Shown here: in pieces, positions 16,785 to 60,387 of the stretch | Numbering within the stretch: position 1 is the first letter of the stretch | Layout: each line of letters begins with the position of its first letter | The notes under the pieces: model-generated | What the model was told of the DNA's origin: nothing | The model's database searches: none | Seen by the model: the letters and a program-made list of their open reading frames with translations, nothing else | Program-made: the position numbers and the translations under genes | NCBI RefSeq assembly: GCF_011386835.1 | Contig: NC_088811.1 | Location: 12,524,001 to 12,588,000, forward strand | Source of the DNA: Chrysemys picta bellii | Lineage: Eukaryota | Direction of reading: 5' to 3' | Length of the DNA stretch: 64,000 nt

Positions 16785-16803
16785 TTTATTGCACTCATTT
16801 ATT
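16785..16803 (-). terminator. ANP tandem polyadenylation signals
   Basis: Two AATAAA hexamers on the - strand. Confidence 0.7.
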
Positions 16804-16825
16804 TGATGAAAGAAACAGACCTGCA

Positions 16826-16846
16826 CTTTCTGTCCAAGGTGCTGAA
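16826..16846 (-). promoter_or_regulatory. RE1/NRSE (REST-binding) element in ANP 3'UTR
   Basis: TTCAGCACCTTGGACAGAAAG has perfect TCAGCACC-nn-GGACAG half-sites. Mammalian NPPA carries a known 3'UTR NRSE. Confidence 0.85.
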
Positions 16847-17140
16847 ATCTGGGCTGGAATTCTTTTCAGTGACAACGGACTAAAATTATCCTTTAACCCT
16901 TACGCTTCAGGGAGAAAGCCAACATCTTGTGCATTGTTTGACTCATGGTGCTGGGGGGCGGAGGGGGGAAATTGTTTGCAAATGGGTGAAGCCAGGTGGC
17001 AGCTAAGTTTCGCCTACTGTCCCTGCTGCAACATAAGTTACCAGCGAGGAGCTAAGAAGATGCAGTTGACTTTGGAAGAGGTTCGATGTCCAGGGATCTG
17101 AGGAAGAAGATCAGGATTGCCCCCATCTCCAGGTATAGCT

Positions 17141-17146
17141 TCAAAA
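17141..17146 (-). CDS. NPPA: ANP exon 3 coding part (F*)
   Basis: Strong acceptor ttgtctttttctctctccttcag|TTT TGA; downstream AATAAA at 16798-16803 and 16785-16790. Confidence 0.8.
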   Translation of the reverse strand, partial: F

Positions 17147-19683
17147 CTGAAGGAGAGAGAAAAAGACAAGTAAATGTAGGGGTGGTACATTTCTTTATTC
17201 TTTGGGGGGTTATTTGTGCTATCGGAGCATAACCTACTGGTGAGCGTGTTACAGATAGGGAACTTTAGCTCAAGTACATCAGCTTCTGCTTTCAGCTCTG
17301 AAGTTCCCTGATTCAATCACCAGTGTGTTGCTCAAACAGTGGTCATCACAATAGCACCTAAAGGTACGGAGAGCGGGATCCCGGTGCGCTAGGTACTATA
17401 AACACACACATGAGACTACAGTCAAGGCAGCTAGAGAGTGGGAGAATTATTATCCCTATTTAACAGAGCGGGAGTTGGGCTACAAAGAGATGAAGTCACT
17501 TGTCACACAGGAAGTCTGTGGCAGAGCCAGGATTTGATGCTAGATCTCCTGAATCCCACCACTCAACAATCCTTGCTCTTAAACACCAGCTGAATCAGAA
17601 CGAATGCAAGGCAGGGTTTTAAAGGGTGGATAAAGACAGGAGCAACTTAAGCAGCCATTGGTGCATCAGCAATCCCTTCCCATTGAGAAGCCCGGCAGCA
17701 TCCCTTTTTCCTTTTCCCTCCGGATCCCTTTCCCCCATCCTCCAGCTGGGCTGCTGCGGTGTTAAATGTTTGGGCCCCTCTGTCCTGAACTCATCACAAA
17801 AGAGGATGGAAGCTGGTTCCTTTTTAGTAGCTCATTTAAGCTTCGAGAGGAGCCTTCCCACGGTTTGTGACTAGCTGGGATCGTAAAGTGGTGGGAAGGT
17901 AACACGTCGTACTGTGTGCCGCACGTGATCCTGAACAATGCCAGAGCGTGGCTACTTGAGTAGAATAGCTAGCGCCCGGCTAAGACAGGAGTAAGATGTG
18001 GTGGTGAAGGCATAAATGTTTAAATCCTTGAATCACACAAAGAGCAATGAGGCACTGGAATGGTTTAGAGTGGTTCACCGGGGGCTAACCTTTCATCATT
18101 ACAAAGTGTTATCGGGTGAGATCAGGACCTTGAAGAGGCGAGTTAGCTACTGTGATGACTGTGCAGTCAGTGTAGACAAGGACAATTGTGTTCAGTGCCA
18201 TGCTGGGACTTGGGTGTAACCAGGACTAGCTAACATGATGCTGTACAGGATTTGCCCTGGTCTATGCTGACTGCAAAGTTGTCCGCCTCGTGCTGGTTGA
18301 TCCTTTGAGGCTGGGATCTAACCTAGTAAATTTTGCATTGAGGACGTGCCCCGTGAACGATGTGCTGAAATGAAGAAAAGGCAGCATTTGAGTCTGAATA
18401 GTGAGGGAAACTTACTGGCCCTGATACCTTTTAAATAGCAGACGAGTCTCCCGTGGGAAGAAGAGGTAGAAACTCCCTCAGGTTGGATTGTAAAAACTCG
18501 ACTGAGCAGAATGCTCGATGTTGAAGGGGGACAATGCTGTACTGACCCCCAGGAGATGGGCTCTGATTTCTATGGTCCTTACGGTGGAAGATTCCATTGC
18601 TCTGGAATCAAATGCATCCTTCTTGAAAGGATTTTATCTAGGGTGGTTCTTGTGGCTGGTGTCTGAGTGCACCATTCCACCCGGGTTACGTGTTCTCACT
18701 GCAGCACTTTATGTTAAATTAGGGAACTGACTGCTAGGGACTCAGCCAGAAAAGGACGCAGTCTTCATTATCGTTTCTAAAAATTGAAATTTCCTAAGAG
18801 TTCAGAAAAGACATGTAAGAGAGAGGCTCACTGAAGCTAGAGCCCCCAACCCATTTTAAGTCCCACTGTTTTTTAAATTATCCACCTGGACGCTGCAGCA
18901 CAAGAACAAGAGAGTTGGCGTAGGAGACTCCTCAAAATCCATCATCCATCTTTTAACCTGAACTAGACAGTCCACCTTGACTTCCTGGGAACTCTGCCCA
19001 GACCGTAACATTGCTTCATCCTTACTCTATTGCCCCAGCTGTGCTTGAGTCATCTAGCCATTCCCTCTCCCTCTTACCCGGTAGCTGTTGCATCCAAGTC
19101 CGCTCTGGGCTCCTATTCTATCTATCCGTTGGCCAAAGCAATCCGAGAACCTTCTCATGCTGCGTGGCGAGTTCAGCAGTGCTCGTAGCTTGCTCCTCAG
19201 GGCAGACGGAGGTTTCTCAGGCAGCTCCCAGCTGTTGCGCCCATGGGCCAGGCCTTCTCTTTGCGGTCTAACGTAGTTGCTGTTCCTTGGACCAAGGGGG
19301 CGTGAGGCATCTCCTGGGGCTTCCTCATCCTGTTCCTTCATTTCTTGGGACAGACCTGCCTCGGCTTCTTCTGATGGGAGCTTGTCCTCCAGGCGGTCCA
19401 GCAGGGTCTGAAATGCAGAGAGGCAGCGGGGGAGAGAGCGTTTAACCCTAGAATCGCCCTAGGGGACGGAGTGAGTGGCAAAGCAGTGCACACCTTCCCC
19501 GCTCCCCCAGCCCTTGGTTGCATTGCGTTCTGACAGTGATGCCTGCCACCCTACCTTGAAGTCCGCCAGTTCCGCAGCGGAGGCCGAGCTGTACGCGGGA
19601 TGAGCGTTGGCTCCTCCTTGGGGCTTCATGCTGAACATCAGCAGCAGCGAGAACCGCAGGGCAGCAGCAGTCAACGAGCCCAT
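17141..19683 (-). CDS. NPPA: Atrial natriuretic peptide precursor (154 aa)
   Basis: complement(join(17141-17146,19078-19407,19555-19683)). Signal peptide [17 protein letters not shown]; pro-region ...[14 protein letters not shown]; mature [29 protein letters not shown] with a 17-aa ring. Phase-0 introns, a 1-codon last exon and adjacency to CLCN6, all as in mammalian NPPA. Confidence 0.93.
17444..17556 (-). mobile_element. MIR/CORE-SINE in ANP intron 2
   Basis: attattatccctatttaacag...gaagtcacttgtc...ggcagagccagga. Confidence 0.55.
19078..19407 (-). CDS. NPPA: ANP exon 2 (TLLDRLEDK...GCNSYR)
   Basis: catttcag acceptor; CGG|GTAAGA donor; 110 codons. Confidence 0.95.
19555..19683 (-). CDS. 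NPPA: ANP exon 1 (MGSLT...ELADFK)
   Basis: ATG at 19683; AAG|GTAGG donor. Confidence 0.9.
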
Positions 19684-19759
19684 GCCGTAGTCCAAGTTCT
19701 CCTCTCGCCTCCAGTGGTTTGCCCCCTCTCGCTGATGGGCTGCGAGCTTGACCCCTCCC

Positions 19760-19993
19760 TTTTTATACGTGCAGAGTCAGAAGGAGTCACGCCCAAGGAA
19801 TGAAGCCCCCGCCGCATTCTGTCACTTGCCCGCGATAAAGGATCTTGAGACCGGAGCTGGCAGAAGATTCCCTTTTAAAGTTATCCATCCCCTTGGGGCG
19901 GCGGAGGCTCGTCGGCTCCAGCGGGAATGACAGTGCGAGGACCGCATTCCTGTTGATTTGTCTCAAGAGGTTTCACACTTCAAAGGTGTGAGA
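19760..19993 (-). promoter_or_regulatory. ANP proximal cardiac promoter
   Basis: TATAAAAA 19760-67; CAAGTG NKE-like about 19823-28; GATA + SRE GATAACTTTAAAAGGG 19870-85; TBE-NKE TCTCACACCTTTGAAGTG 19976-93. Matches recalled mammalian Nppa promoter elements. Confidence 0.85.
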
Positions 19994-21925
19994 GAAGCAC
20001 CAAAAAACATCCCCCTTTATCTCTCAGCAGTGCCTCCGGATTCTTGTTCCTTAACGATGGAAACAATGAGGCAAGTGTTGGACAACTGGCCAGCAAGCCT
20101 CGAATGGGCATCGTGGTGGGGGATGCGGGAGAATTGGCTGCAGAGCTGCCATTAAAGCCAGTGCCCTAGACATGTGGGGCCAGGTCCTCAGCTGGTGTAA
20201 ATCAACACGGCTCTTTGGGGCCGGATCTCTATAGATTGGCTGAGCTCCATTCATTCCTGCACCAGCTGAGAATCTGTCCCGTCTGTCCCATGGACCCAGG
20301 ACCGTTTAACACTCCTGTCAGCGTGATGACAGGGCTTCCAGCTCGTGCTTCCGGAGACCTGGGATTTCATTCAAGAATGGTGCGAGGAAGGAAGCTAGAG
20401 CGGGGTTAGTCAAGTGTGCAGGAGGAGAGAGAACTTTTGAAAGGCTGGTTTTGAAAAGATCCAGCCTCCTTTTTTGAGCAAAGCCTGCAGCCCGGGCGTG
20501 CGAGAAGCGTGTAGGATGCCAGGGCAATTTTGTATTTCAGACCCATGCCTGGTAACTGGAATCTGTAAATTGAACGACAAGACACGGTTGGATTTTGAAT
20601 TTCCTTTCACGTTTACCACTAGAATACATTAGCAAGTGCTTCTGAAGATGTTACCGTCGCATTTAGGGAGAAGTCAGGTGTCATTAGGGCAAGGGACGGG
20701 GGATTCTGTAGGACTGGGCAGCTCTGGCTCCCTTTGGTACCTTAGTCAAGAAATGGGACCTCTCTGCCTCAATCTCCCCCTTTGGTAATGGCGGTGATAA
20801 CACTTCCCTCCCTCCTGGGGTGTTGTGAGCTTTAGCTGATGTTTCTAATGCATGCGAAGAGTCTCGGGCGAGGAAGGGGAGATATTTTCGGAAGCTGCTT
20901 CTGTATCTGCGCTGAATCGTTACTTGGTATCTAATCTAGGGTCGCTGTTTTTAACATCAGCCCTTGATTTGCACGGGTAGCTGTTTGCCCCCAGGGCAGC
21001 CTGGGGCTAGACGATCTGCAGGGGGTTTGCCATTCCAAGCTACGCCGAATCCCTCTCTCCCAGCCGCATGGCCTTGCAGTGCTCCCCACCTGAACGCTTT
21101 GCAGAGGAGGAGAGTTACTGGCTCAGTCGCCTGACTCCCCGCGCCTGGTCTTTAGCTGTAGTTTTAATCCCTGACCAATAGCGCCACCTCAGGCTTCCCC
21201 TTGAGGGGGTCTCTTTAGAATGGGGGAGAACTTTGCTCTGCTCCGATGCCCATGCTGTGCCCAACAGAATCTCTCCAGCCATTTCAGTCTGTTACTGGAC
21301 CCTCCATTCCTTCCTTCCCTTCCCCTAACTGCCTCTGAAAGGTGCCAGCGTGAGCGGTCTCCTGAATCTCCATCCGCCAGCAGCTTCCACCACCCCCCTG
21401 CAGCCCACGGCGGATGGTGAATAGGACTCGGTGCTTATTGTGGGGCCCACGCGCTGCCCTTGGAGTGAGTCTAAGCAGCAAAGACTTTAACGTGTGCTGC
21501 ACAAGGGCTTACCAGAGCAAGTGCTCCAGCTCCCAACCGAAAGACCATGTGCCATGGAAAAGGCAGCTGGGGGCAATGGGCTTTTCTATGCATGCGTGTG
21601 CCGTACTTCTTAAGTAGAGGCCATGCAAGCCCAGTGCTAAACCGCAGTGGAAGTCTATCCAGGAGCCCTTATGCATGGAACATCCTCCCTGAACTGATCC
21701 ATCAGGACCCTGCCCTGTGCTGTTTCAAGTCTCCCCTTATCACCCACCTCTGCCATAATGCCTGGAAGAAATCAGCCACCTGGCAGGGCTAGATTGAGAG
21801 GCAGCACGGGCCTCCCGTGAGCCGCATAATTTAAATAGAGGCACTGGGCTGTAAAATCATGTCGGTTTGCAGCTCTCTCTCTCTTTCTCTCTTTTACTTT
21901 TTGTGCCTCAGTCACTTTCTCAGAG

Positions 21926-22046
21926 TGTAAGCTCTTTGGAGCAGGGACTGGGCCTTCATATGTGTATGTACAGCACCTACCCCTCTGGGACTCTGCTCCT
22001 GCCTGGGCCTCTGGGACCTACCTCACCCTCAATATAAAATAATAAC
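21926..22046 (+). mobile_element. L2-type 3' tail (similar copies at about 31305-31418, 43705-43835, and 56728-56825 on the - strand)
   Basis: tgtaagctct..gcagggac...tgtacagcacc...aataataa. Confidence 0.6.
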
Positions 22047-22522
22047 AAAGGTGGGTCTCTAACTAGGTTGCATTGGAAACCGTGGGGGTGCTCTTGCGGG
22101 GCCTCAAGACGGGGCATCGCCTAATGAAGGGGACCTTGTTGCATGTGTGACCGTGTTCTCTAGCTAGCTAGGCACCCATCAGCAGGTGGGTAGCTGTCCT
22201 GCAGAGAGGAAGCTCGGCAAGAGATGTGATGCTGAAGGAAGAGTTCTGCTAACTAATGCCAGCAGTGAGACAGGTTACAATTTTCGATGCTGGGTGCCTA
22301 AAGCCAAGCTCCTAAATCCCATAGACTAGAACTGGCCTGATTATCAGAGGTGCTTGAGCTCGTCGTAATACCCCTGAGGTCAGTGGCGGCTGCTGGACAC
22401 TCAGCGTCTTGCGAAATCAGGCCATTAATATTGAAGTGCCCAAAGATAGATTTAGGAAGCAGGTTTTAGGCAGCCAGGACTGAAAATGGTGACCCTAAGT
22501 ATCAGCAAGCCAAGGAGGGTGA

Positions 22523-26278: not shown

Positions 26279-26453
26279 GAGCATTGGCCTGCTAAACCCA
26301 GGGTTGTGAGTTCAATCCTTGAGGGGCCTACATAGGGATCTGGGGCCAAATCAGTACTTGGTCCTGCTAGTGAAGGCAGGGGGCTGGACTCAATGACCTT
26401 GCAAGGTCCTTTCCAGTTCTAGGAGATAGGATATCTCCATTAATTTATTTATT
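26279..26453 (+). mobile_element. Tortoise Pol III/SINE (tRNA-derived), 5'-truncated
   Basis: cctgctaaacccagggttgtgagttcaatccttgagggg head; ccagttctaggagatagg tail. Confidence 0.9.
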
Positions 26454-26472
26454 ACCATGGGCACTAGATAGT

Positions 26473-26654
26473 GGGGGTAGGGATAGCTCAGTGATTGGAG
26501 TATTGGCCTGCTAAACCCAGGGTTGTGAGTTCAATCCTTGAGGGGGCCATTTAGGGATCTGGGACAAAAAAATAGTTGGGGATTGGTCCTGCTTTGAGCA
26601 GGGGGTTGGACTAGATGACCTCCTGAGGTCCCTTCCAACCCTGATATTCTATGA
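26473..26654 (+). mobile_element. Tortoise Pol III/SINE, full length, CR1-like tail
   Basis: A box TAGCTCAGTG, B box GTTCAATCC, 3' end ccttccaaccctgatattctatgat. Confidence 0.9.
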
Positions 26655-28272: not shown

Positions 28273-28465
28273 GGGGGGGAGGGATAGCTCAATGGTTTGA
28301 GCATTGGCCTGCTAAACCCAGGGTTGTGAGTTCAATCCTTGAGGGGGCCACTTGGGGATCTGGGGCAAAATCACTACTTGGTCCTGCTAGTGAAGGCAGG
28401 GGGCTGGACTCAATGACCTTTCAAGGTCCCTTCCAGTTCTAGGAGATGGGATATCTCCATTTATT
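28273..28465 (+). mobile_element. Tortoise Pol III/SINE
   Basis: Same head and tail as the 26279 copy. Confidence 0.9.
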
Positions 28466-28922: not shown

Positions 28923-29026
28923 ATTAATAAAATGTAGGCATTTGAATTCAGGAAAGTATATGGATTTTTTTTTTTAATGCAACAGACAGGAAAAAACAAT
29001 TCAGCATAAAAGACTAATGTGTTAGT

Positions 29027-29113
29027 TTTATTTGAACATGATTTTTTTTTGGTGCTAAAGTAAGAAATGTTCTTATAAAACATCAAATAAATAAATAAAT
29101 AAAAATAAATAAA
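29027..29113 (-). promoter_or_regulatory. BNP 3'UTR AU-rich element (29086-29113) and polyA signal (29027-29032)
   Basis: Overlapping ATTTA pentamers on the - strand, then AATAAA. Confidence 0.8.
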
Positions 29114-29213
29114 TAGGAATAACTTCTCCATGAAAGCGTTTAGAAAGCACATGGAAAGCATCCTGGGAGAAATCGGCACTGGAACACATTCTTCAGAGCA
29201 CTGGAGAGTCGCC

Positions 29214-29230
29214 TTAATTCTTCCTGAAAC
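29214..29230 (-). CDS. NPPB: BNP exon 3 coding part (GFRKN*)
   Basis: tttgcag|GT TTC AGG AAG AAT TAA. Confidence 0.9.
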
Positions 29231-32200
29231 CTGCAAACAAGTCATGAAATAAGAGTTATGGCAGGAAAATGGGGAGACCTTGAATGCACTTTGCTCTGTC
29301 TTTCAGTGCTTGCCATCCTCATCCTAGGTCTGTGCTTTGAAAATCAAATCCCCAAGCTGCGTCCTTTAGTAAAACACAGAAGGTGGTTTTGTTGGGTGAC
29401 CTTTGGCAAACCACTTTGCCTTGTTGTACCTCAGTTTTCCCATGGGAATAGAATGAGACTTTACACTCTGTTATAAAGCACATTAAGATCTATGGATGAA
29501 AATCACTATACAAGAGCTGTTAAATCCTGGGTTAATATAAATTGTCGGGGGGTTAAAGAAAGATGCTTCTCTATGTGACGGTGTCAGAAATCACTCCTAG
29601 GGCTGCTTTTAAAGGACAGTGTCAGTTTAAAAATTATAACTAGGCTTGGCAGGATTCGATTTTTATCGGTAAATGTCAGTAGATGTCAATTTCACCATAC
29701 ACCCAATGGGTTACTTGTGAAACAAACAAAAAATATTGCCAGGGATTAATCATTGAAATTTACAGCTAAGCGAAGTAAGCTGCTGCTTGAACTTAGTAGA
29801 GTTTGATGTAAGGATATTTACTTGATATGTTTTGACATGTGACGTTGACCGCTTGTGTTCCTGACTCTTACAAAGCTTTAACTTTTGAATCTCCGTGTCT
29901 GCTGTCATAACTAATTCTGTTAATTTCCTGTTAATTTCCTGCCACTGAAAATTTAAAGGATAAAACTGCTTAAAAATAAACATCTATATATTTGTTAGAA
30001 TATCAAATTCTGCCAAGCCTAATTATAATAAACTTGCAAAAAAATTATTGTGTTACTAAGAACCACTGTAGATTATTAAAATATGGGCTAGATCCTCAGC
30101 TGGTGTTAATCAGCGTGGCTCTGAGTCAATGAAGCCAGTTTACACCAGCTGAAGATCTGGCTTTGAAAACTGTAAAAATCCTAGGCCATGTGCGCACCAG
30201 GAGCGCCTCGTCTGTATAGGATACTGGTATTTTCCTGTACCAGTAAAGTGCTGGGCTTTTGCAGGCCTAATTTATTCCAACCCGTTCCCCCTCTCTGTCC
30301 TGAGCCATAAAAGCACAGCTTCAGTGAGAGAACTGCATCTGTACCCGTGGCTTTTTCTGGCACAGCCCAGTTGGTCACAAATCACAGCTCATCCCGCCCC
30401 GAGCGACACAGCCATGCCGGCAGAAGTCTGTGGTGTGGCCATCGCCTAAATTACTTCTCCCCATTTCTGCGGTTGGGTTTACACTTTGTACTTCACTCAG
30501 ATCGGTCAATGAAAACAGACCAGTCAGTCTAATTTTCTCAGGTTCTCGTGCCCTAGCCTAATGCTGCAACGATTGGTTTGCAATCACCATTGGCGGGGGT
30601 GGGGAAGTGGTTAAATCCAAATCAAACACTATTTATACTGAGATTTTTCTAAATCTAAACAAATGTCACTAAAACGCTTTTGTTTTAAATGTTTTCCTTT
30701 TTTAAAAGCAAAAGCCAAATTACAGGCCTACACTAACGTGCATCATTTCTTTAAAAGCAAGATGTCTTTGGTAGCAGAAGCATCTCTCTATCCAGGTTTT
30801 TATGCTGTGCCTATCACCGTGGTATCCAAGCACCTTGCCATGTCCCTACGCTATTAATATCACTATTTAAATAAATTTATATAGTGGCACTAATTTGCAT
30901 GATGATGATGTGCAAAAATAGGCTTAGATCCTGCATGTGGCCCCTTGTGCCCATGCAGCTCCCAGCCGAATAGATCCAATGGCAAGATCAGAGCCATAGA
31001 CAAGAAGGTCCTCACTGCATCGAGTCTCAATAAAGGAAGATAAGCTTTGGACAGGACACAGGCCGCCAGTTCAGGAGAAGGATGAGGTGGGTTTCAAGGC
31101 TGGATTTGGAGAAGGGAGCCTGGTTCAAGGGGGCTGTTCTAGACATAGGGGTAGTTGATAAAAGGCCCGAAGATAAGAGCAGGGAAAGGACGGGAAGAGA
31201 GGCTAAGGCAAAAGGGGTGAGATGTGTAATGAGCAGGAAGGAGAGGAGTGGGAATGTGAGCAGATGACGGTGGTTTGACAGGACAGGGATGTCCATCGGG
31301 TTGTCTCTAGGCTGTAAGGTCCATACAGAGATCATCCTTTTGTTCTGAGTTTGCACAGCGCCTAACACAATGGGGTGCTGGTCCATGACTAGGCTTCCTA
31401 GGAGCTACAGTAACCCACATAAATAATCATCCATTTATAATGAGTTGGGTTAGGAGGGACTCACCATTGCAGCCCATTCCGCTCAGAGAGCCGATCCTGT
31501 CAATTCTTCTCCCAAAGCAGCCTGAGTCTCTCATCATCTTGGGAGCTTGCAGCCCCCTCAGTCGCTTGAGGATGGGGTCCCTATAGGACAGAGGGGCGCT
31601 GGGGGCTGGCCTGGGTTCGGGCTCCTGGTCACTGCTGTCATCAAAGAGTTCTGGTGGAGTCTCTTGCTGAGCTTCGGGCTCCTGAAGATCAGGGTTGGAC
31701 TCCAGGGCTTCCATCAGTGAGAACTTGTCCTCCAGCCTCTCCAACAGAGCCTGCGAGAGAAGGGCACAGACTGAAACACTCATCCCTGTGATTTCCCCCT
31801 TGCCTTCCTACCCGCTCAACCTTTGCCTAACCACTGAAAATAGCAGTCGTCCTATTGCCACCGGGCCTGGGGAGACTGTGTGCAGGCTGGGCTGTAGGGT
31901 CACCTCCCCTCTGTCTTCTTTGTCCCACCCAGACCCTACAGTCTTGTTACTCTGCCCCTGTGTGAGCACATACCCGGGGGGTTCGGCAGGGTTGTGCTTG
32001 GGTGGCTAGCCTGAGCCCCCCCACCTCCCCACCACAGCCACACTGCTATTTGTAGTGTCCTGGCTTGAGTAGAGCTAGCACATCTCTGTCTACCCGCACT
32101 GAGAAGCACCCTCCCAGGTGCTGTGTACACATCCCCTAAGATGGAAGGGGTGGTTCACTGCCTCAATGTCCTTTTGGGTCCATCTCTGCTCCAGGTTCTT

Positions 32201-33707
32201 AGCTAGCAGCAATGGCCTGCAGTGCTCCTCTGTACCTGGCCAAAAAGCTGCCAGCTTTCCCCTTCTTTTGCAGACCTCGGAAGGGGTCACCTGCATCTGT
32301 CCCCCGCCAGGCTGTTGCGAGAGGCTTTACAGAGAGAAACTCTTGATCTCGCCCAGAAGCTGCCCTTGGTGTGGAACAGTGTTGCTATCCCCACAGTCGC
32401 GTGGGGTGCACACATCTAGAAAGCCTGCACACCAGTCTTTGCCCTGGCTTCCTGCTCACTTCTGAGGATCACTCATCACTCAAGATGAGTTTTAAAGCCC
32501 TGAATAACGTGGAATCGGGTCTCACTTCCAGAGCAGCTCAAAACAGCTCAGAGCCTCTTGCTGTCCCTTCCTAGGTTTCAACCCCCTCCAGTGAGCAGCT
32601 ACCTTCTGGGGGGTGCTGCCTGTGGGATCCTCTCCTCTGGGCACTTTGCAAGAGCCAGAACCTAGCTACGAGGCTCCATGCAAAATTTAACAGTTTGGCT
32701 TAACTTTTGCCTGTTTTATTCTGGGGGGTTGTTCTAATACTTTTAGGGAGCTTGTTCTTTAAGGGCTTGGTCCTATACAGGGCTGCTCACGCCGGTCCCA
32801 ATCCAGCAAAGCACTTAAGCAGATGTTTAACTTAAAGCAAATATATAATCCTATTGAAGTCACTGGGCTCCTTCATCATGCACGACGGAACCTGAATGTT
32901 GGTTGCTATGGCAATGGACACCATAAATCCCACAGGTGCATAATCATTTCCCAGCTCTGGGGGCTTTTCTGAGGGAGTCCAGCTTTGTGATCAAACCATT
33001 CATTTTTTTAAAAAGTAATGAATGAATCTTCTAAAAGTTCACACCCATCTGCCCCAATCCCCTGCTCATCTCCTGCCCACACAAACCCTGGGTCTTTCCT
33101 CGTGTTTCCCAAATGTGAATGCACACACTGTCTTCTGCTTCGGTGCACCTGTACCTTAGTGAGAGAAATCGTATGAGGGACCTCATCTCAAAAAACCCAT
33201 TGTCTCCTCTTCTAAAGCTACACTGATCCTTTTATAATTCCTTCTAGAGGAATGTCCCTAAGTTCTATTAGCGCCTTAAGGAAAGACGGTTTCTGTATTG
33301 AAGAGGCAGATGTTCCACAGCCTCGGGACCCTCTTCATCCCTGCTACCACCAAGGATCATCGGATGAACCCGCTAGCTGACAGGATCAGTCCCTCGAGGG
33401 TTCTGGGTTCTCTGACGCGAGAGCCCCATCTTAAAATGGTTTGGAGCTGACAGTGCAGTTGGCTGGGTCACCTTGTCCCCTGTGGGTCTCTGCTAGCTAC
33501 ATTACTGCACTAGAGAAAGGTGTTGGCACCACACCGTGCTCGGCGGAGCCCTGGAGAGTCTAACAACACAAAGCAAAGAGTCCTCACCTCCATGCTGGCC
33601 AGTTCTTTGGCAGGGCTGAGGCCGTAGATGGGGTTGGTTCTGCTGGACTGGAACTGAATGAGCAGCAGCAACAGGATCCCGCAGGAAAATGAACCTTTAG
33701 TGTCCAT
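29214..33707 (-). CDS. NPPB: B-type natriuretic peptide precursor (140 aa)
   Basis: complement(join(29214-29230,31465-31750,33588-33707)). Mature [29 protein letters not shown], one residue from the recalled chicken 29-aa cardiac peptide (BNP). ATTTA-rich 3'UTR and an MCAT/GATA promoter typical of BNP. Confidence 0.9.
29345..29515 (+). mobile_element. MIR/CORE-SINE in BNP intron 2
   Basis: gtgacctttggcaaaccact...cctcagttttcccatggg. Confidence 0.6.
29641..30021. mobile_element. hAT non-autonomous element in BNP intron 2
   Basis: TIR TAGGCTTGGCAG / CTGCCAAGCCTA; 8-bp TSD attataac/attataat. Confidence 0.85.
30085..30160. repeat. Ancient hairpin mini-element (similar copies at about 20176, 27985, 42675, 47080, 58885)
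   Basis: agatcctcagctggtgt...acaccagctgaagatct imperfect palindrome. Confidence 0.65.
31465..31750 (-). CDS. NPPB: BNP exon 2 (ALLERLEDK...GMGCN)
   Basis: ctcgcag acceptor; G|GTGAGT donor (phase 1). Confidence 0.95.
33588..33707 (-). CDS. NPPB: BNP exon 1 (MDTKG...ELASME)
   Basis: Hydrophobic signal ILLLLLIQF; GAG|GTGAGG donor. Confidence 0.9.
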
Positions 33708-33818
33708 CCCTCTGGATCGGTTTGGACAATGGGAAAGTTCAAGCTTCTTCTGAGATGTCCCTTCGGGTCTCTCTTTCTCTCTCTTCCTTGTCCTGTTTTC
33801 TCCCTCCCCTGGCTGGTC

Positions 33819-33935
33819 TTTTATACCATTTGGGTGTGATCCCTGCTTCCTAGGTTATCTGTGGATTTATCGGGGGCACATTCCAGTCCCATGGCAGGCA
33901 TGCAGCTCTGTCAGGAGAAGATTCCCTTTATTAGC
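33819..33935 (-). promoter_or_regulatory. BNP proximal promoter
   Basis: TATAAAA 33819-25; GGAATGTG...GATAAATC...AGATAACC (MCAT + 2 GATA) 33853-85; CArG-like CTAATAAAGG 33925-34. Confidence 0.8.
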
Positions 33936-35099: not shown

Positions 35100-35467
35100 T
35101 TAGGAAAATACTGCTCTATCATGAATTCACTCTTCAGCCTTGTGCTTAAAACACAAGAGGCCATAAAAATGACTCCATTTACAGATTTTCAGGGGAGATC
35201 TAAGCTCCGACACATAACGTTCTCTTCTAATCTTACTGACTGGGTTCTTCTGAAACAGATAAAGCTGAAGCAGAGGAGTGGATTTCAGAGGGAAATGGAT
35301 TTCCCAGTTTAATTTAAAATGAATTTGTTTCATCATATTAAAAAGACAATCAATTATTGAAAAGAATCTCCCTACAGATTATGTAAATATTTATAAATAT
35401 AAATAACAGTGATAATTATGTATATATTAGTGTGTGTGTGTGTGTGTACACACACACACACACACAC

Positions 35468-35667
35468 ACCCCTCTACCCCGATTATAACGCTGTCCTTGG
35501 GAGCCAAAAAATCTTACCACGTTATAGGTGAAACCGTGTTATATTGAACTTGCTTTGATCCACCGGAGTGCGCAGCCTCCATCCTCCCCCCGCCCCCCCC
35601 GGAGCGCTGCTTTACCATGTTATATCCGAATTCATGTTATATCAGGTCACATTATGTAGGGGTAGTG

Positions 35668-35670
<3 letters not shown>
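35468..35670. mobile_element. Tc1/mariner(pogo)-like MITE embedded in microsatellites
   Basis: Ends cc(c)ctctaccccg / ggggtagtggtg; repeated ttataac/gttata motifs. Confidence 0.6.
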
Positions 35671-35704
<34 letters not shown>

Positions 35705-36261
35705 TATATATATAATGTGTGTGTATAAAATTATATATATAACTTCATTAAGGTTACAGAGCCAAGCCCTCAAAAATTAGGAAATGCCAGAATTAAGGGT
35801 GACTTGGTGACTGTGCACCTTTAAATCAGCCCCCTTGTGCTGTGCTTTATGATCGTAGGTGAGGGGGTTATTAAAGACTATCTTCCCCTCCACGAAACCT
35901 CTCCCTCATTCTGTCCACAGGATGAAGGGTGCTCTCTTAATGAGCAGCCATTCATTAGGTTTTTTTTTTCTCCTCATTCTTCAGTGTGTGGCCCTGGGCC
36001 TTATTTGCTGCACACAGTTCAAACCCTGCTCTGAAGAATTATTAATGCCCTTGTGGGCTTTTCTGTGACACTCATCACTATGGTATCTGAGTGCGTCACA
36101 AATGCTAATGCATTTATTTTCACAGCACCCTTGTGAGTTGAAGGGGTGTCATTCCTGGTTTACAGATGGGAGAGCTGAGACAGAGATTAAGGTCCAAAGT
36201 ATCCACTAATTTTGGGTGCCCAATTTGAGATGCCTAGGACCCAATTCTCTTATTTAATACA

Positions 36262-38450: not shown

Positions 38451-39084
38451 AACCGGGCCTGGTGTATGCTGGGCCAGGCTGTGCTGACACTCCACAGCGA
38501 TGCTGAGCGAGCATTTCAACCCAGAGCCCGCCACCGTCCGGTGCCCCGAGGAGCCCAATCTACTCCGCCATGGGGCAATCTAGGGGGGCTTTACCAATGA
38601 GAGAGAAGAGTTTCCCCCCCCCTCAAAAGCACCACTTGCACTGGGGTAAAGCCGGAGTGACTTCATCACCTCTGGGGGGAGCCACTCCCCATTGACCCCA
38701 GTGGAAAATGAGAGCAGAATTGGACCCTCGCGTGGGATGACTTCCTCCAAGTAACCCAGCCCAGTTGTGCAAGTGATGCGTGAGCTTTGCGGGGGCACTT
38801 CGCGTGGGTCAGGAAACTGGTCCCAGGTCCCCAATGCCCCGTCAGAAAGGACTCGCTCCTCGCGGGCCTCCAGAATGAAATGAGCGGTTTATACAAAATA
38901 TTTATTGATACACGCCACGGCTGTCAATTAACCATATATACAACGCGAATTCATCCACCAGCCAAGCCCTGTTCAGGCGTGACACATGTTCCGCTCGGGA
39001 GGGGTCGAGGGCTTCCCACCACGTTACCAGTCCACACAAAAGAGGCTCAAAAATGTCGTGGGAGGCTGGTGGGAAGTTCTAGAT

Positions 39085-39113
39085 TCAGCTTCTCGATCTC
39101 CTCTTCCAGGAAC
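39085..39113 (-). CDS. RNP-like exon 3 coding part (RSWKRRSRS*)
   Basis: tctctttccccccttggttctag acceptor; TGA at 39085-87. Confidence 0.8.
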
Positions 39114-40076
39114 CTAGAACCAAGGGGGGAAAGAGACACAATGAGCACCACGTTCAGACTCTCCGCTTCTCTTCTAGGCTAGAGCAGCTCCTGTCACCAC
39201 GCGGCTGGACAGCTGTCTGCTTGGCCTACGGGTAATATAAGGGAGCTGTAGGGCCCCACTGTTCAACCCTTTCCAACCGGAGCCAAGGCCTGCCCCCCAC
39301 CCCCACCCCCAGACAGGGGATGGGGAAGAATCTTGCAGAGTTGGGTCGGGCCATTGCCAGCCATGCCTCCTAAGGCTGGTGCTGTCTCCTGGCGAGGTGG
39401 GGAAGAGCTCTAGACACGCCGGGGCCGAAGGCAGGCTAAGGGTCTAGCTAAGACCTACGGGCTTTGAAGATGTTGCACCCAAGTCCTGTCTGAGAGCCGA
39501 TCCTCTCGATCCTGGTCCCAAAACACCCAGAGAAGTGTCTCATCCTCCGGGGAGAAGCAAGGAGGTTCCTCCACCGACTCTCCACGGGATCCCGGGGCTG
39601 GAGCTGGGTAGCGGGGCTGCTGTCCGGCTCAGCAAGGTCCCAGCTAGGGTCGTCCTCTTCCGCCCCGTAGTCCAGGCTCTCCAGCTCCAGCGGCTCCCCT
39701 TCCTCCCCCTGAATTTTCTCCTTCAGCAGCTCAAGGAGGTCCTAGAACAAGAGAAGAGAAGACCGTGATCAGCTCCCGCGTAACTGACCAGGGCATCCAG
39801 TCCCTGGGGCGGGGCAGAGGGGGCCACAAACCGGACCTGTCCTCTCTCGGATTGAAAATCACACTGCTCGGAAGGGGGCTCTGCCCCCTTGGCCTGCTTG
39901 TTACGGTGCCTAGTGCTAACACCAGCTCCCCACCCCACCCCTGTACCGCCTCTCCTCACCTGCAGGGACTGGAGCTCCTGGCTGGTGTATTTCCTGGACA
40001 GCGGGTGCCCGCCTGCTGGCCCCCACAGGCTGAGGAGCAGCAGAGCGGCCCAAGAGCACAGGGCTGCGCCTTTCAT
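39085..40076 (-). CDS. RNP/VNP-like natriuretic peptide precursor (142 aa) with long basic C-terminal tail
   Basis: complement(join(39085-39113,39459-39741,39960-40076)). Signal [23 protein letters not shown]; ...[51 protein letters not shown] at 40147-53; AATAAA at 38901-06. Confidence 0.88.
39459..39741 (-). CDS. RNP-like exon 2 (DLLELLKEK...GCNIFKA)
   Basis: ttctcttgttctag acceptor; C|GTAGGT donor (phase 1); hand-translated 94 codons + 1 nt. Confidence 0.92.
39960..40076 (-). CDS. RNP-like exon 1 (MKGAAL...ELQSLQ)
   Basis: ATG at 40076; CAG|GTGAGG donor. Confidence 0.9.
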
Positions 40077-41017
40077 CCTGCCCGGTTCTTGCTCTGCCTC
40101 CAGACCGGAGCTCCTGGGGGTGGGCGTGAACGGCTGCTCCGGCTTCCTTTATAGCCGCCCTTCGCCTCCGGGCGGCTTCCTGCCCGAGCTCGGAATCCGG
40201 GCACTCGGCCCTGATAAAGGAACTGGTTGCAGCCAGTGGCACTCGAGGTTACCCTTTCGGAAGCGGTGTGTCCCCCGCCTGGAGTAGCGGTCGGGAGCCT
40301 GGTCCACTCCAGCAGAGCCCAGCCGCCCTGGGGGATCAGGGCATTTCAAGTGCCTCCTTCGCGGTCCCTCTCTGGGCAGCGCAAGGGAGGCAATGACCGC
40401 GTGGTCTCCCACGTTCCCAGCAGTCGCCATTTGGCTAGCGCTTGATGGATCGCCTGGGATCCCTTCAGTGCCTTGGGCACGTCCTCCTGACCCATGGGAA
40501 ATGATCCATTGCTCACCCGCCGTGAAGGGAGATCAACCCCCCTTCTTGGGCCAGTCTGCAGCCTCCTGTAGCTGGGGGAGGGGAGCAAGGGGGTGCAGAG
40601 CGGGTTTGGAACCGGTGTCTCTGCTCCGCTTGCAGCAGTTCACACCGGCAGCGTTTGTGTCTCTTTCAGTTTGAGCTTTAAAATGAAATGGGAAAACAGA
40701 CACGTGTTAGGGAAATCTCACTGCCAAGGCCTCTCCCACCCCGGCAGACCCTGTGCCACTGACCAGCTCTGCCATGTTCCACTCTGGTCTGGGGGCCATC
40801 GGGGTTAGTTACTTGGCGACTAGAGGTGACCGCCAGTGGTGGCATTAGTTACCAGCTTGTATTACTTTTCCCCATTGGACATACTGTGCTGCCCTGCTTG
40901 GCCACTTGCAAGAGCATCGCCACCGTTCTGTGGGCAGGGATGCTCCCTATTACGTGCCACCCATGGGTGTCTGTGTAACAATCTTTCCATCACGCTATTT
41001 TCAAAGGACTTCAGCTT

Positions 41018-45600: not shown

Positions 45601-45776
45601 GTTGTTACCAAGCACGGCCCCGATCCTGCAGCTGAATCCATCTGGGTGACCCGTTGACTTCGGCGCGGCTCCCTGAGGGTGTACAGGTCGGCACGCTCTA
45701 ATCCACGGGTCTGCAACAGGACATTCATGACTGAGGACTATGTCCGTGTTCTGTCTAGATGCTATTCTTCATTAGC

Positions 45777-46098
45777 TCATAGAAAAGAAGGGATCTAAAG
45801 TGGTCATCTAGTCTGTCCCCTGTGCTGAGGCAGGATGAAATATGCCTAGACTATCCCTGACAAGTGCTGGTCTAACCTATTCTTAAAAACCTCCAGGGAT
45901 TTATTCCACCACCTCCCTTGGTAATCTGTTGCAGTGCTTAAATATTAGAAAGAGTTAGAAAGCTTTCCTGCTATCCTATCTAAAGCACCCTTGCTGCAAA
46001 CTAAGCTGATTACTTCTTGTCCTACCTTCAGTGGACATGGAGAACAATTGATCACCATCTCCTTTATAACAACCTTTTACATATTCGAAGACTATGTC
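45777..46098 (-). mobile_element. Degenerate CR1 3' fragment
   Basis: Antisense CR1-type text: tcataga...ggtcatctagtc...tccaccacctcccttgg...tacttcttgtcctaccttcagtggacatggagaac. Confidence 0.7.
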
Positions 46099-48624
46099 CC
46101 ACCTCAGCCTTCTCTTTTTATGTACTACAGTTATTACTGCATTCAGTCACTCTGAAACCGAGCTGACATTTGCCATGCTGAGATTGCACTGATTTTTGAC
46201 TGCTGTAATCAGACGGTGAGCTTCCTTTTCTCATGATGGATGGGAGTGGAAGCCTATCACCATACAGAACCATTTTTACCTAAATCTGGGATCTAAATCA
46301 ACCTGCCAGATCCCTTCAACCTCTACCTGGCTTGATCCTTCATTTGATGTCATGAGTCATTTCAAGAATATTGGTGGAATGTTCCATTTTGCACCCTTGT
46401 GCTGAAAGGTAGCACTGTATATAATGGATATGGTGCATCGATTCTTTCATAACTAGGATGCTCAGAGCTCTGATGTGCCTAAGTAAATGATTAGAACATC
46501 TTTCCCCAGCAAGAGACGGTTTTGTTCATTCTCACTGATACAGCTGATTAATTTTCAGAGCGAAAAACAAAGCTGATCTCTTAAATAGAATCAATGGTGA
46601 ACGCATAAGACCTAATGAAGCTTGACAGCCAGAGACCTTCAGGAATTGTTGTTGAATTTCCTACTCCTGGGCTGAGAGAGTGGCTGCATGAGATCCACTA
46701 ATTGCGTGTGTGTTTTGCTTTTAGGAGAATGTAGTGTTTGGGGGGAAGAGGGGTTGTTTTGTTTTCTCCCTAGAAATGCAAAGAATCATGAACTTGAAAT
46801 AACAGGGATAAAATGGAAATGAAAGGGAGATAAAGGAGGAGCCATGAGAGAATAAACTGATGGTGACTTCTAAATGTTAAAAGGATTTATAAAGGATAAA
46901 GTGGAACCACAACCAAGAAAGGAAAGGACACCTCCATTCGCAAGTAATTCTGGGCTTCAGGGTCCCCTCCTGATGGGATTCTGACAGTTTCTGTAGAACT
47001 GTGCTCATGAATTTGCAGCGTCCCCTTTGGGAGTCTATTTGTAAATTCCATGCAGAAGTGTTCTCGAAAATGTATTGGGTAGGAATCTGAACTTGCTTTA
47101 CACCAGTTTGCAACTGGGGTAATGCTGCTGGGTGGCACACGTCTCTGATGTGCATTGGTGTAAATCCACCGGAATTCAGATTTCACAGGAGCTCCAAGGA
47201 AGTCGTCAAAGCCGCAGTGAGGGTTGGAGGAAGGGTTGCCCTAGCCTCAGTGGCTAAGGGCAGGTCCAGACAGTACAGGTACATCTACACTGCAATCATG
47301 TGGCGTGCAGCTCATGTAGACCGATCTGGACACAGCTGAGCTAGCTTTAATCGAATTTGCTTTGTGTGTCCATGCACCCCTATTGTGTGTTCTTCCCGGG
47401 AATTCTGTGGGGAGCAAGTTTGCAGGCAGGGTGTTTGCTCAGGGCAGGGCCTCTTACATGAATTACTGTGGCATATTCATGGAAAGTAAATTTGAATTTA
47501 ATGATCGCAAGAATTTTCACTGGACACCGGATTTCAAGAATGCAACTCTTGCCATCAGAGAAGAGAAATAATACAATGCAGCTTACGTGCCCCAGTCCAA
47601 CCAGTGTGGGTTCGGCACTGAAAATCTGCAGAACACGCTGGCAGGCAGTGGACAGGCTGTGCCCAATTATGTGACCCCTGTTCCTACATGAGTAGTCCCA
47701 GTAACATCCGTGGTATGGCTCACCAGCATCGGGGCTGCCCAGTCAGCTCCTTGGCAAGCAGCCTAGGGACTGAACTACACCCCATGTGTCGAGTAACAAT
47801 GAACAAGTCCGAGGGCATGTCTACACATCCAGTGCTGCAGTGTCTGGTGAAGATGCTCTGTGCTGACGGGGAGAGCTCTAATTGGCATAATAAAACCACC
47901 TCTGCGAACAGCAGAAGCCATGTCATTGGGAGAAGCTCTCCTGTCCCTGAGCAACGTAAGTTCTGCGACAGACTGTAGTGTAGACATAGTCTGAGGCACA
48001 GGAAAACAGGGCTAGGTTCAGTGATTGAACTGTTTGCACCAAAGAGCCTACCCAGGTATATTTTGGATACAACTTTTGTCAGAAAACTAGTTTGTGTCTC
48101 AAGTGATCCATGCATAAGACTAGGGATCACGATGAGTTTCCCTTCGAGGAGGACAATGTTTTTCTAGACAAGACTGACCCTTAGACATGCAAACCACCTC
48201 CAGGCATTTCAGCTGGGACTCCCTGTGGCACTTAACAAAGAAGGTGAAAGCTTCCTTAGAATAGGTATGCAAAAGAGCCTCATGTCAGTGTCACTTGCTT
48301 GTAAAGTGTGTCATCCCTCTCTAGTGGCTGGCCCACATAGAGAATAACAACCTACTATTGCTGCCAGCTAATGGAGTTACCCCTTTATCTCAAGTGATAG
48401 AGGCAAATGCTTTGGTGCTACAAGGCCAGGGTTCAACCCCCAGTGAGGGCTGTTGCATCAGCCATGCTGTGTTCTCTTGGGCTCCTCCCCACCCCAAAAG
48501 CTCCTTTTTGTAGGTAAATGCTTTTTGTTTTCTTTTTTTGTTTTTGTTTTTTATAAAATCCCTTTTTATCTTTCTGCAAACAATCTCTCAGGACATGCAT
48601 GTTAACCATTAACCAGCCATCAGA

Positions 48625-49027
48625 TGAATTTGAATAGTTCATATTTATTTGACCAAATGTAAATCAGGGCAACACTTTGTCCTCAGGAATGATGAACTAG
48701 GAAGAAAATCAGAATGGAGGTTTAAGACACATTCACCAAATGATGAAAACCAGCGTATTTTCAGCATCCATGACACAATGACCGTTTCATACACATGGCA
48801 CATAACCAAGACAAATCAATGGAACCGATAACTGCTTTGATAAGTTAATACTGTGATACAAACAATGTAGCAATGGCCAGTTTCTTAGTGGTCCCGTATA
48901 GTGGGGGATGGCCCGGGAGGAACTCGTTCAGTACAATGTCTACAGGGGAGTTAGTGGAGCTGGAGCAGTTTGAGCTGAACATCTCCTTGAAAGGCAACGG
49001 GTCCTCTAGGTCCTGAAAATCTTAGTC
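48625..49027 (-). other. CNP3: Predicted non-coding third exon (3'UTR) of CNP3
   Basis: Donor ATG|GTAAGA after 49674; acceptor ccttttgtttcctcggcag at 49028-30; AATAAA at 48644-49. Confidence 0.65.
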
Positions 49028-49349
49028 CTGCCGAGGAAACAAAAGGAATACGTGACAGAAAGGAGGTCCGCCAGGTTTCACTAACAGGAACTAATTGACT
49101 TCACTATTCTAGGGCTCGGTTCTGCTCGCTTACCCTGCTCCATGGGGCTTCTCTGGACTTACACCAGCGTCATTGGGGAGCTGGTAAAAGCCTCTCTTGG
49201 CTGGTTTCTCTGAGGCATCTTTGGAGAAGACAGGGGAGGGGTGGGTAAAGCCCTGGAGGTGTAAGATTAATAAACCAAATGTGCAGGTGATGCTGGGGAC
49301 GTCTGTGGAGTTGCACCAACATGAAGTTGGTCCCTTGGGTCTGAGAGGA

Positions 49350-49540
49350 GGGAGGGATAGCTCAGTGGCTGCTAAACCCAGGGTTGTGAGTTCAATCCTT
49401 GAGGGGGCCACTTAGAGATGTGGGGCAAAATCAGTACTTGGCCCTGCTAGTGAAGGCAGGGGCTAGACTTAATGACTTTTCAAGGTCCCTTCCAGTTCTA
49501 GGAGATAGGATATCTCCATTAATTAATTAATTTATTTTTT
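49350..49540 (+). mobile_element. Tortoise Pol III/SINE with internal deletion, in the CNP3 3'UTR intron
   Basis: gggatagctcagtgg^ctgctaaaccc... Confidence 0.88.
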
Positions 49541-49685
49541 AGGGGAGGAGGGATGGCAAGTGCTGTATGTACCTTTTCCTTCAATTCAAGCTCTAAACTC
49601 TTCCTCCTCTACGTACTCATACCCCCCCCCCATATATATACACACACACAGTCTCGCACTGCTTCTCTCTTACCATAGAGAACAG

Positions 49686-49991
49686 TTAGCATCCCAGTCC
49701 GCTCAGGGAGCCAATTCTGTCCAGCTTGACACCAAAACAACCCCTGGACAGGCCCTTTTTGCTCCTGCCTCGGTATCTCCTGGATGACCCCAGAAGATCG
49801 CTGAAGAGCCTCTGGAAAGTACTGTCGCTGATGGGGACCCCCTCGGGCTGGTCCCTGGAGTTTCGGGCCCATTGGAGCTCAGGGTCCTGTTGGTCAAAGG
49901 CACCTGTTGGGATCATGTCTTCTCGCTCTTGGTCCATCTCCTCTGAGGCCAGGGGATGCTCCAGATCTTCATCTAACAGTCTGGACAGGCT
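49686..49991 (-). CDS. CNP3: CNP3 exon 2 ([10 protein letters not shown]...GLGC*)
   Basis: tgtctttcag acceptor; TAA at 49686-88. Confidence 0.95.
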
Positions 49992-51171
49992 CTGAAAGAC
50001 AGGGAGGAGCGTGGGGGAGGTATTGAGGTTCAGACACTCCTTCGATTATTGTCATGTAAACCTACGTCAATGCTAATCTTCAACGAACCCATTTTAAGCT
50101 TGACTCGGAAGGAAAAATGTGCTAAAACATCCACAAAGTAATGATGATGATCACCCGGTCTCATTGCCCTCCACTACCAACTCTGCTTTACGTTGGACAC
50201 CAGCTCTCAGATGCCTTCAGGCTACAGGCTACTGCTATGGTCTTAGTTAGACATGAACAAGAAAAGTGAGGGATGTAAAAGGAGTATCTCCTAAAGCTGG
50301 GAGCCTGGTGTCTGGGCTGATAAACAAAGAGGCTAGGGGGAGGGGGACCTGAAGGAATAGTAAGCAAATGATGGAGATAGTGGAACAGCTGGAGAGAGGC
50401 TAGGCTGATGCTGGAAGGATTACCTCTGAGGAGGCTGGAGGGTTACATGGTATATAGGGATGTTGGACTGACAGTGAGCTAATTAGAAGATACTCTTTCT
50501 ACCAGGGATGCTTAAAATGCTTTTTATTAACAGTGTAGGATCCCTTCTCTCCCTTTCTTTCCTGGGTTTATCAAGCAGGTGACTGAATCCTCTGCAGTTC
50601 CGTTGAGAGAAGATTCCCCTCCTTGTTAATAGCCTGCAGCCAAAACCAGATACTTCGGCTAGAGACAGAGGCAGGTTAGGAACTCGAGGGTGCCCAGAGC
50701 AGGGCTACAGGTGGGAGGACATCCATATTCTGGGTAAGAAAATGCAGCTTCCTTTGCTCTGAAGTTTAATGACTTCACCCAGTCCCAGACTGACCTGAAA
50801 TGTTGCAGTCTCCCTCCTACCCCTGGGGAACAAACAACACTTGACCTCCAATTCTCTAAAGCCAATCGAGATAGAAGTCAGGCAAGGACTAGCTTTGGTT
50901 TTGCTCAGTGAAGTAACCCACGTCTGCTAGCTTCATGACCCCGAAGCTCTTGAGCATCTTCCAGCAGCCAAGGAGGGCTAAGAAGAGCCATATCTAATCT
51001 GAAGCTTTGGAGCCAGTAACTCCAAGTTCCAAGGAATCATCAGCCCCGTGATATTGAAATGAGCAGCTGCTCTCTTACCTGTAAACTGGAGAGGGGTTTG
51101 GCCCTCGCTTGATCCTGGCTGAGGAGAAGCAGCAGCAGAAATCCACAGCAGAAAATAAGCTTCGGGTTCAT
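49686..51171 (-). CDS. CNP3: C-type natriuretic peptide 3 precursor (132 aa)
   Basis: complement(join(49686-49991,51079-51171)). Signal [24 protein letters not shown]; RRYRGRSKK|[22 protein letters not shown] ends at the ring Cys (C-type). Linkage to BNP/ANP identifies the CNP3 lineage rather than mammalian NPPC (CNP4). Confidence 0.9.
51079..51171 (-). CDS. CNP3: CNP3 exon 1 (MNPKL...LSSLQ)
   Basis: CAG|GTAAGA donor. Confidence 0.9.
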
Positions 51172-51275
51172 CTTTGTGTTGTGTTGTCTCCTGCAGCGAT
51201 GGGGCGTCTCTCTGGCTCCTCTTCCCCCTCGAGTCTCTCCAGTTGCAATGTTACTCTGTGTCTCTGGCTACCAGC

Positions 51276-51338
51276 CTTTATACCTTCCCCCAACCCCTCC
51301 CAGGGCCACCTCTGAGCTCCTGCCACAGCCAGGATTGG
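51276..51338 (-). promoter_or_regulatory. CNP3 TATA and CCAAT boxes
   Basis: TATAAAG at 51276-82; CCAAT at 51334-38. Confidence 0.65.
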
Positions 51339-60380: not shown

Positions 60381-60387
60381 ACCCACA

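Follow-up and report, generated by a model that had tools for sequence, protein, structure and literature searches.

The 64,000-nucleotide stretch of painted turtle (Chrysemys picta bellii) DNA analysed here, hereafter the window (NCBI RefSeq assembly GCF_011386835.1, contig NC_088811.1, positions 12,524,001 to 12,588,000 of the forward strand, numbered below from its first letter), contains four natriuretic peptide (NP) genes, which we identify with high confidence as the NP cluster of this species: CNP3, RNP, BNP and ANP, a set of old, co-oriented tandem paralogues lying upstream of CLCN6. The four-gene cluster is the ancestral sauropsid state, retained in the turtle, and RNP, the least certain of its members, is transcribed, spliced and polyadenylated. 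The four genes, with the evidence that places each of them, including a maximum-likelihood (ML) tree, are as follows.

49516 to 51282, minus strand: CNP3 gene (gene model, GT-AG splice sites, Pfam ANP match, ML tree).
38881 to 40153, minus strand: RNP gene (gene model, tails of orthologues, spliced contigs, ML tree).
29012 to 33825, minus strand: BNP gene (gene model, identity to a RefSeq protein, Pfam ANP match, ML tree).
16785 to 19767, minus strand: ANP gene (gene model, identity to a RefSeq protein, Pfam ANP match, ML tree).

The NP ring motif C-F-G-x13-C has exactly four matches in a six-frame scan of the window, every one of them on the minus strand, at 49739 (CNP3), 39525 (RNP), 31519 (BNP) and 19140 (ANP), and the same scan returned no fifth NP gene or pseudogene in any frame. 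Along that strand, the genes follow one another in the order CNP3 (51.3-49.5 kb), RNP (40.15-38.88 kb), BNP (33.8-29.0 kb) and ANP (19.8-16.8 kb), after which comes CLCN6, on the opposite strand and tail to tail with ANP, serving as the synteny anchor of the cluster. All four exon 2 translations match the Pfam family ANP (PF00212, curated cut-off 27 bits) with 40.5-58.1 bits and E-values from 1e-15 to 3e-10 (BNP 1e-15, CNP3 4e-15, ANP 1e-10, RNP 3e-10), and each precursor carries near its C-terminus the ring signature of the family, C-F-G-x(5)-[DE]-R-I-x(6)-G-C. The four models share the layout of a prepro-hormone, in which a signal peptide, recognized by eye as a hydrophobic, signal-like N-terminus, is followed by a pro-segment and, last, by the mature peptide. 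All seven introns are of the GT..AG type with pyrimidine-rich acceptors, a TATAAA element stands 77-118 nucleotides (nt) 5′ of every ATG (51282, 40153, 33825 and 19767), and AATAAA polyadenylation signals are found at 49536 (CNP3), 38906 (RNP), 29032 (BNP) and 16803/16790 (ANP). Pairwise identity among the four turtle paralogues is 41-49%. An initial annotation of the window had described four complete minus-strand NP genes, each with a TATA box, signal peptide, cysteine ring, splice sites and polyadenylation signal; ring scan, Pfam and gene models agree on this description, and the interval that it gave, 16785-51338, takes in all four genes.

RNP was first described in chicken as renal natriuretic peptide. 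The turtle model consists of exons 40076-39960 and 39741-39459 and the coding part of exon 3 (39113-39085), and encodes 142 residues. Exon 2 ends at a donor, GCCC/GTAGGT, at 39459, which is joined to an acceptor at 39113 and yields the tail SWKRRSRS; 142-residue orthologues with the same tail occur in Terrapene, Emys and Chelonia, and this tail requires the two splice sites just named. A read-through form ending in ...KARRS and a stop codon, as well as a donor at 39455, had also been considered and were rejected by the C-termini of the orthologues and by the spliced contigs, which set the donor at 39459.

Transcripts of RNP were sought among contigs assembled from four sequencing runs of four studies and placed on 38800-40300. 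One of these contigs (X11, 595 nt) covers 38884-39111, 39457-39740 and 39959-40039, so that the two introns are removed precisely at 39459/39113 and 39960/39741 once the stated cut offsets (+2 and +1) are taken into account. The same joints are repeated in X1 and X2, spliced contigs being present in the runs of three studies on one organism, and the joint between exons 2 and 3 is also present in a contig from a second organism (X7). The poly(A) tail is added at 38881, where a poly-T loose end is seen some 20 nt beyond the last base of the AATAAA hexamer starting at 38906; at the other extremity, contigs stop close to 40118, some 35 nt downstream from the TATA box. Word depth is in the hundreds in the spliced contigs versus 8-18 in those covering the introns, a roughly 30-fold drop. 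RNP molecules that are spliced and tailed are RNA, and both junctions of this least certain gene are matched exactly in the contigs of three studies.

Two further observations concern RNP. Contigs of the runs X2 (773 nt) and X7 (1014 nt) extend beyond the polyadenylation site at 38881 toward about 38100, into a GC-rich block at 37.4-38.7 kb, which suggests a longer isoform of the 3′-untranslated region (3′-UTR) or read-through transcription. Separately, an RNP-like precursor recovered from Logan contigs (P0182; L001 and L002) has an unusual alanine in place of the ring Asp/Glu.

The ANP model is built from exons 19683-19555 and 19407-19078 and a third exon whose coding part (17146-17141) supplies a single phenylalanine and the stop codon; the resulting 154-residue precursor, ending in ...CNSYRF, is identical to the C. 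picta bellii RefSeq protein 'natriuretic peptides A-like' (P0014). It groups with tetrapod ANP, its gene is adjacent to CLCN6, and its tail conforms to N-S-[FY]-R-[YF]. Turtle ANP and BNP cDNAs were reportedly cloned by Trajanovska & Donald in 2008. The Chelodina cDNA products (P0022 for ANP, P0106 for BNP) are identical to the painted turtle sequences at 28 of 28 positions of the mature region of ANP and at 27 of 28 positions of that of BNP.

The BNP model comprises exons 33707-33588, 31750-31465 and 29230-29214, the last coding for (G)FRKN and the stop, and its 140-residue product, ending in ...CNGFRKN, is identical to the C. picta bellii RefSeq protein XP_005292869 (P0295). The FRKN end of P0295 served to locate exon 3, which begins 2.2 kb downstream of exon 2; a search within 2 kb for an exon reading SRKN and a stop, or for a pyrimidine-rich acceptor, found nothing, and a candidate near 30935 was dropped, the FRKN end of P0295 mapping to 29230. 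The gene has the short tail and the AU-rich 3′-UTR of BNP (five ATTTA in 700 nt) and is orthologous to the cloned BNP of reptiles and birds. The BNP frame stays open from exon 2 into intron 2 (31427-31464, minus strand), and the RefSeq 'isoform X1' of BNP in Terrapene and Trachemys is an intron-retaining form with another C-terminal tail.

CNP3 has two coding exons, 51171-51079, which encodes the signal peptide, and 49991-49686, together specifying 132 residues with a stop codon directly after the ring cysteine and no C-terminal tail. The canonical exon 1 is intact and of the same length as in the 132-residue models of Eretmochelys and Pelodiscus, while exon 2 matches the Chrysemys model P0015 with 100% identity and that of Eretmochelys (P0018) with 96%. 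In the window, the gene precedes RNP by about 9.4 kb and is linked to the BNP/ANP locus, not to the NPPC locus; this linkage, the lack of a tail and a place in one clade with other vertebrate CNP3 sequences are all characteristic of CNP3. Alternative first exons for this gene occur within intron 1, on the minus strand, at 50920-50955 and at about 50530-50625, and are used by P0015 and by the Terrapene UniProt sequence P0299, the latter having a separate intronic first exon and likewise beginning without a signal peptide.

The orthology of the four genes was assessed with relatives gathered by a profile of the four exon 2 translations and by the RNP exon alone, to which 150 diverse representatives, 30 of them named, were added. 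In an ML tree computed from 79 precursors (149 columns, LG+C20+F+G4), the four turtle genes fall in four separate supported clades, given here with their two support values.

CNP3 clade (99/99): turtles, crocodile, tuatara, newt and kiwi.
RNP clade (100/97): turtles, alligator, kiwi (Apteryx), woodpecker (Dryobates), gecko, anole, wall lizard and python.
Sauropsid BNP clade (99/87): turtles, including the cloned Chelodina cDNA (P0106), canary and worm lizard, with mammalian and frog BNP as neighbours.
ANP clade (100/98): turtles, including the cloned Chelodina cDNA (P0022), alligator, tuatara, skink, cobra, frogs and mammals.

A coelacanth protein named 'C-type natriuretic peptide 3' sits near the CNP3 clade. 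Because each gene groups with non-turtle orthologues in a supported clade of its own, none of the four is a turtle-specific duplicate, and the recent turtle-specific duplication that the initial annotation had named as one outcome refuting its reading was not seen. Among the sequences sampled, the ANP clade includes no bird, and neither the RNP nor the CNP3 clade includes a mammal. The assignment of RNP to the bird gene found between CNP3 and BNP draws on the clade itself, on the tail and on its position both in the window and in a gecko; we infer that this sauropsid clade corresponds to chicken RNP, the chicken sequence lying outside the tree set. Database names are an unreliable guide to these relationships, as BNP is carried as 'A-like', CNP3 in RefSeq as 'C-type natriuretic peptide 1-like', and RNP in other turtles as 'natriuretic peptides B-like', 'A-like' or 'ventricular natriuretic peptide-like'.

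The mature peptides are 96-100% identical among cryptodiran turtles. Over longer distances, the mature region of RNP retains 82% identity between turtle and gecko versus 54% for the pro-region, and the 23-residue mature region of CNP3 is identical from turtle to kiwi versus 73% identity in the pro-region. Conservation of the mature regions far above that of the pro-segments is, as judged from sequence, the pattern that would be expected of working hormones.

The array is not peculiar to turtles, to which the initial annotation had ascribed the complete cluster. In the gecko Sphaerodactylus townsendi (L004, 359-19432), the rings of CNP3, RNP and BNP are found in one orientation within 19 kb; in Alligator mississippiensis (L003, 10001-17376), RNP is followed about 3.6 kb downstream by BNP, in the same order as in the window; and in the skink Tiliqua scincoides (L005, 2531-21905), BNP precedes an ANP-clade gene and then a convergent CLC/CBS gene, which is CLCN6. 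These loci have overlapping parts of the same co-oriented order, and turtles are therefore not special in this respect. Several other turtles and palaeognath birds probably also have two or three NP genes on the same contig, since the contigs on which these genes are recorded agree in length. Proteins of the ANP clade are present in lepidosaurs (P0144, P0206 and P0078), including skink, cobra and tuatara.

Chicken CNP-3, RNP and BNP are said to have been placed on one chromosome, by Houweling et al. in 2005 and Trajanovska et al. in 2007, and their order and orientation are those of the first three genes of the window. Bird proteins fall in the turtle RNP, BNP and CNP3 clades of the ML tree, and the RNP tail KAR(S/F)W(K/R)R(R/G)(S)RS is common to turtle and to palaeognath or woodpecker proteins. 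Birds differ in the absence of ANP, which the turtle retains beside CLCN6. In mammals, CLCN6 and NPPA are arranged tail to tail, as are CLCN6 and ANP in the turtle, and the mammalian NPPA-NPPB pair is orthologous to turtle ANP and BNP, sharing with them a three-exon structure in which the last exon codes for one to few residues, as well as an AU-rich 3′-UTR in BNP. By contrast, the turtle introns are longer (1.8 kb for intron 1 and 2.2 kb for intron 2 of BNP), and no mammalian sequence belongs to the CNP3 or RNP clades. The locus is the same as the Nppa-Nppb-CNP3 locus of Jensen et al. 2018, eLife (PMC5940360, Fig. 5), who found that Nppa and CNP3 persist at this locus in turtle, alligator and frog and that mammals and birds diverged independently. 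Our conclusion is the same as theirs; the difference lies in RNP, which has 0 occurrences in the text of that paper and is here modelled as a fourth gene, placed in a sauropsid-wide clade and found to be spliced.

The age of the four-gene set is where we depart from the initial annotation, according to which the complete ancestral amniote cluster had survived in turtles and had been pruned reciprocally in mammals and birds. As the RNP clade is limited to sauropsids, the four-gene cluster is shown to be ancestral for sauropsids but is not shown to be so for amniotes. The reciprocal losses themselves are compatible with the tree insofar as birds are without ANP and mammals without members of the CNP3 and RNP clades; it is the four-gene amniote starting point that is not shown. 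Birds later lost ANP, and mammals lack both CNP3 and RNP. RNP may be a fast-evolving duplicate of ANP (or BNP) dating from the sauropsid stem, in which case the amniote ancestor had CNP3, BNP and ANP, and mammals lost CNP3 only. We give this origin slightly less than an even chance. It accounts for the restriction of the RNP clade to sauropsids, for the 'SPR' site that RNP and ANP have in common before the ring, and for the position of RNP in the best tree as the sister group of the tetrapod ANP clade as a whole (87/89, unstarred). That RNP falls outside the entire tetrapod ANP clade, frogs included, and not within sauropsid ANP, is not what such a duplication would predict, although fast-evolving duplicates are often placed outside their parent clade as an artefact; moreover, RNP lies between CNP3 and BNP, away from ANP, whereas a simple tandem duplication of ANP would have placed it elsewhere.

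The same placement outside ANP would suit an older origin, in which RNP is the tetrapod orthologue of the ventricular natriuretic peptide (VNP) of ray-finned fishes, the four-gene cluster predates tetrapods, and mammals and amphibians lost RNP. VNP of the eel type and of Polypterus resembles RNP in its cardiac-type character, in the long basic tail at its C-terminus and in a ring of the form CFG(T/N)R.(D/E)RIG (CFGTR(I/M/L)ERIG in RNP, CFGTRMDRIG and CFGNRIERIG in VNP-type sequences), and it is as 'ventricular natriuretic peptide-like' that some pipelines name the turtle and gecko proteins. In the best tree, however, RNP joins ANP, and fish VNP forms a separate clade of its own (96/90), while RNP-type sequences are absent from amphibians, mammals and coelacanth among the 150 representatives. 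A tree constrained to unite RNP and VNP loses 9 log-likelihood units without being rejected by the approximately unbiased (AU) test (p-AU 0.256), but the grouping of RNP with a lungfish 'B-like' protein is equally unrejected (p-AU 0.251). Since both constraints are tolerated, the data, an alignment of just 149 columns, do not have the power to decide between them, and orthology of RNP to VNP is neither supported nor rejected. We consider this older origin unlikely, and hold equally doubtful its corollary that CNP3-RNP/VNP-BNP-ANP was the ancestral cardiac NP cluster of bony vertebrates, still complete in turtles, crocodilians and at least some squamates and disrupted independently in the lineages of amphibians, mammals and birds.

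From what is known of the family, each precursor would lose its signal peptide and be cut just upstream of the ring. Candidate cleavage sites are SPR in ANP and RNP, the cut falling after the arginine (in the context LLASPR in RNP), APK/MMRDSG in BNP, which would give a predicted peptide of 29 residues (BNP-29), and, in CNP3, the end of a basic RGRSKK run before the 22-residue CNP. The released peptides, each with a 17-residue disulphide ring, would act on membrane guanylyl-cyclase receptors and raise cyclic GMP, ANP, BNP and RNP presumably through receptors of the NPR-A type and CNP through those of the NPR-B type. Processing sites, receptor pairing, tissues and physiology are thus proposed for the turtle by analogy, and the locus would on this basis encode a four-hormone cardio-renal system, as the initial annotation had suggested.

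Several points weigh against a cluster of four working genes. The literature reached holds no peptide-level, receptor or tissue data for the painted turtle. The runs behind the RNP contigs are only guessed to be RNA, a guess for which the spliced joints, the poly(A) tail and the drop in depth over the introns argue, and the protein collection searched contains no Chrysemys RNP. The Chrysemys CNP3 protein of RefSeq (P0015, 113 residues) begins in intron 1 and has no signal peptide, so that the dominant CNP3 transcript may differ from the one modelled here. Transcription of CNP3 is indicated by word shares, which are suggestive only: RNA-like runs contain 0.24-0.78 of the words sampled from 49480-51250, a stretch of which the two exons make up about 0.36, and the share of up to 0.78 for the whole gene may reflect intron-containing or alternative transcripts. 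Together with the intron-retaining BNP isoform annotated in related turtles (P0025 and P0287), the RefSeq form of CNP3 and the gap in RNP could be taken to mean that at least one of the four genes is transcribed yet functionally decaying, and that the turtle does not have four working hormones. We regard such decay as very improbable: all four open reading frames (ORFs) are intact with canonical splice sites, exon 1 of CNP3 included, with the length it has in the other turtle models; the mature peptides are nearly or fully invariant among cryptodirans, that of CNP3 being 100% identical out to birds; and spliced RNP contigs stand at word depths in the hundreds against 8-18 for intron-containing ones. 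Our preferred reading is that of four intact, co-oriented NP genes.

The remainder of the window includes part of one further gene.

1914 to 7423, plus strand: 3′ exons of CLCN6 (chloride channel/transporter CLC-6), identified by CLC-like ORFs and Pfam; the gene runs past these limits and past the start of the window.

Plus-strand ORFs at 2344-2625 and 2612-2851 match the Pfam family Voltage_CLC with E-values of about 1e-12. Inside a CLCN6 intron lies an 89-residue ORF (3502-3771, plus strand), which we take to resemble the C-terminal end of ORF2 of a CR1-type long interspersed element and which is probably a retrotransposon fragment. A dispersed repeat resembling a short interspersed element, about 150-190 bp long, is present in four same-strand copies that are 77-92% identical (49347-49520, 28274-28461, 26289-26441 and 26508-26637), one directly 3′ of CNP3 and the other three 0.5-2.7 kb downstream of the 3′ end of BNP. 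Microsatellites of the (CA)n/(TG)n type occur at about 35400-35800 and 60150-60400, where they show as poly-(VC), (HT) and (YI) runs in the ORF translations. No Rfam family reached its gathering score anywhere in the window, the long ORFs of the GC-rich block at 37.4-38.6 kb and of the right flank at 58-62 kb had no Pfam match, and no gene was found in the right flank as a whole (51.4-64 kb).

About three quarters of this evolutionary story have been published, including the independent divergence of birds and mammals with retention of Nppa and CNP3 in turtles (PMC5940360), and annotations of the genes exist for several turtles. RNP is a modest addition. What is added is that RNP is sauropsid-wide, linked to the cluster and expressed, that ANP-clade genes exist in lepidosaurs, and that database names are misleading. 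Nppa has been said to be lost in all reptiles except turtles (PMC3439475, 2012); because tuatara, skink, cobra and alligator have members in the ANP clade and the skink gene lies beside CLCN6, ANP's loss among diapsid reptiles seems to apply to birds alone. Likewise, RNP was not found in zebra finch or mammals in a study of 2010, which suggested a duplication after the split of songbirds and chicken, that is, a galliform-specific gene (PMC2873334). The gene once held to be galliform-specific is sauropsid-wide here, with a strongly conserved mature peptide, and is spliced and polyadenylated in turtle. The understanding of NP hormones is left unchanged by these findings, and the painted turtle locus offers a clean four-gene reference for RNP function in an ectotherm.

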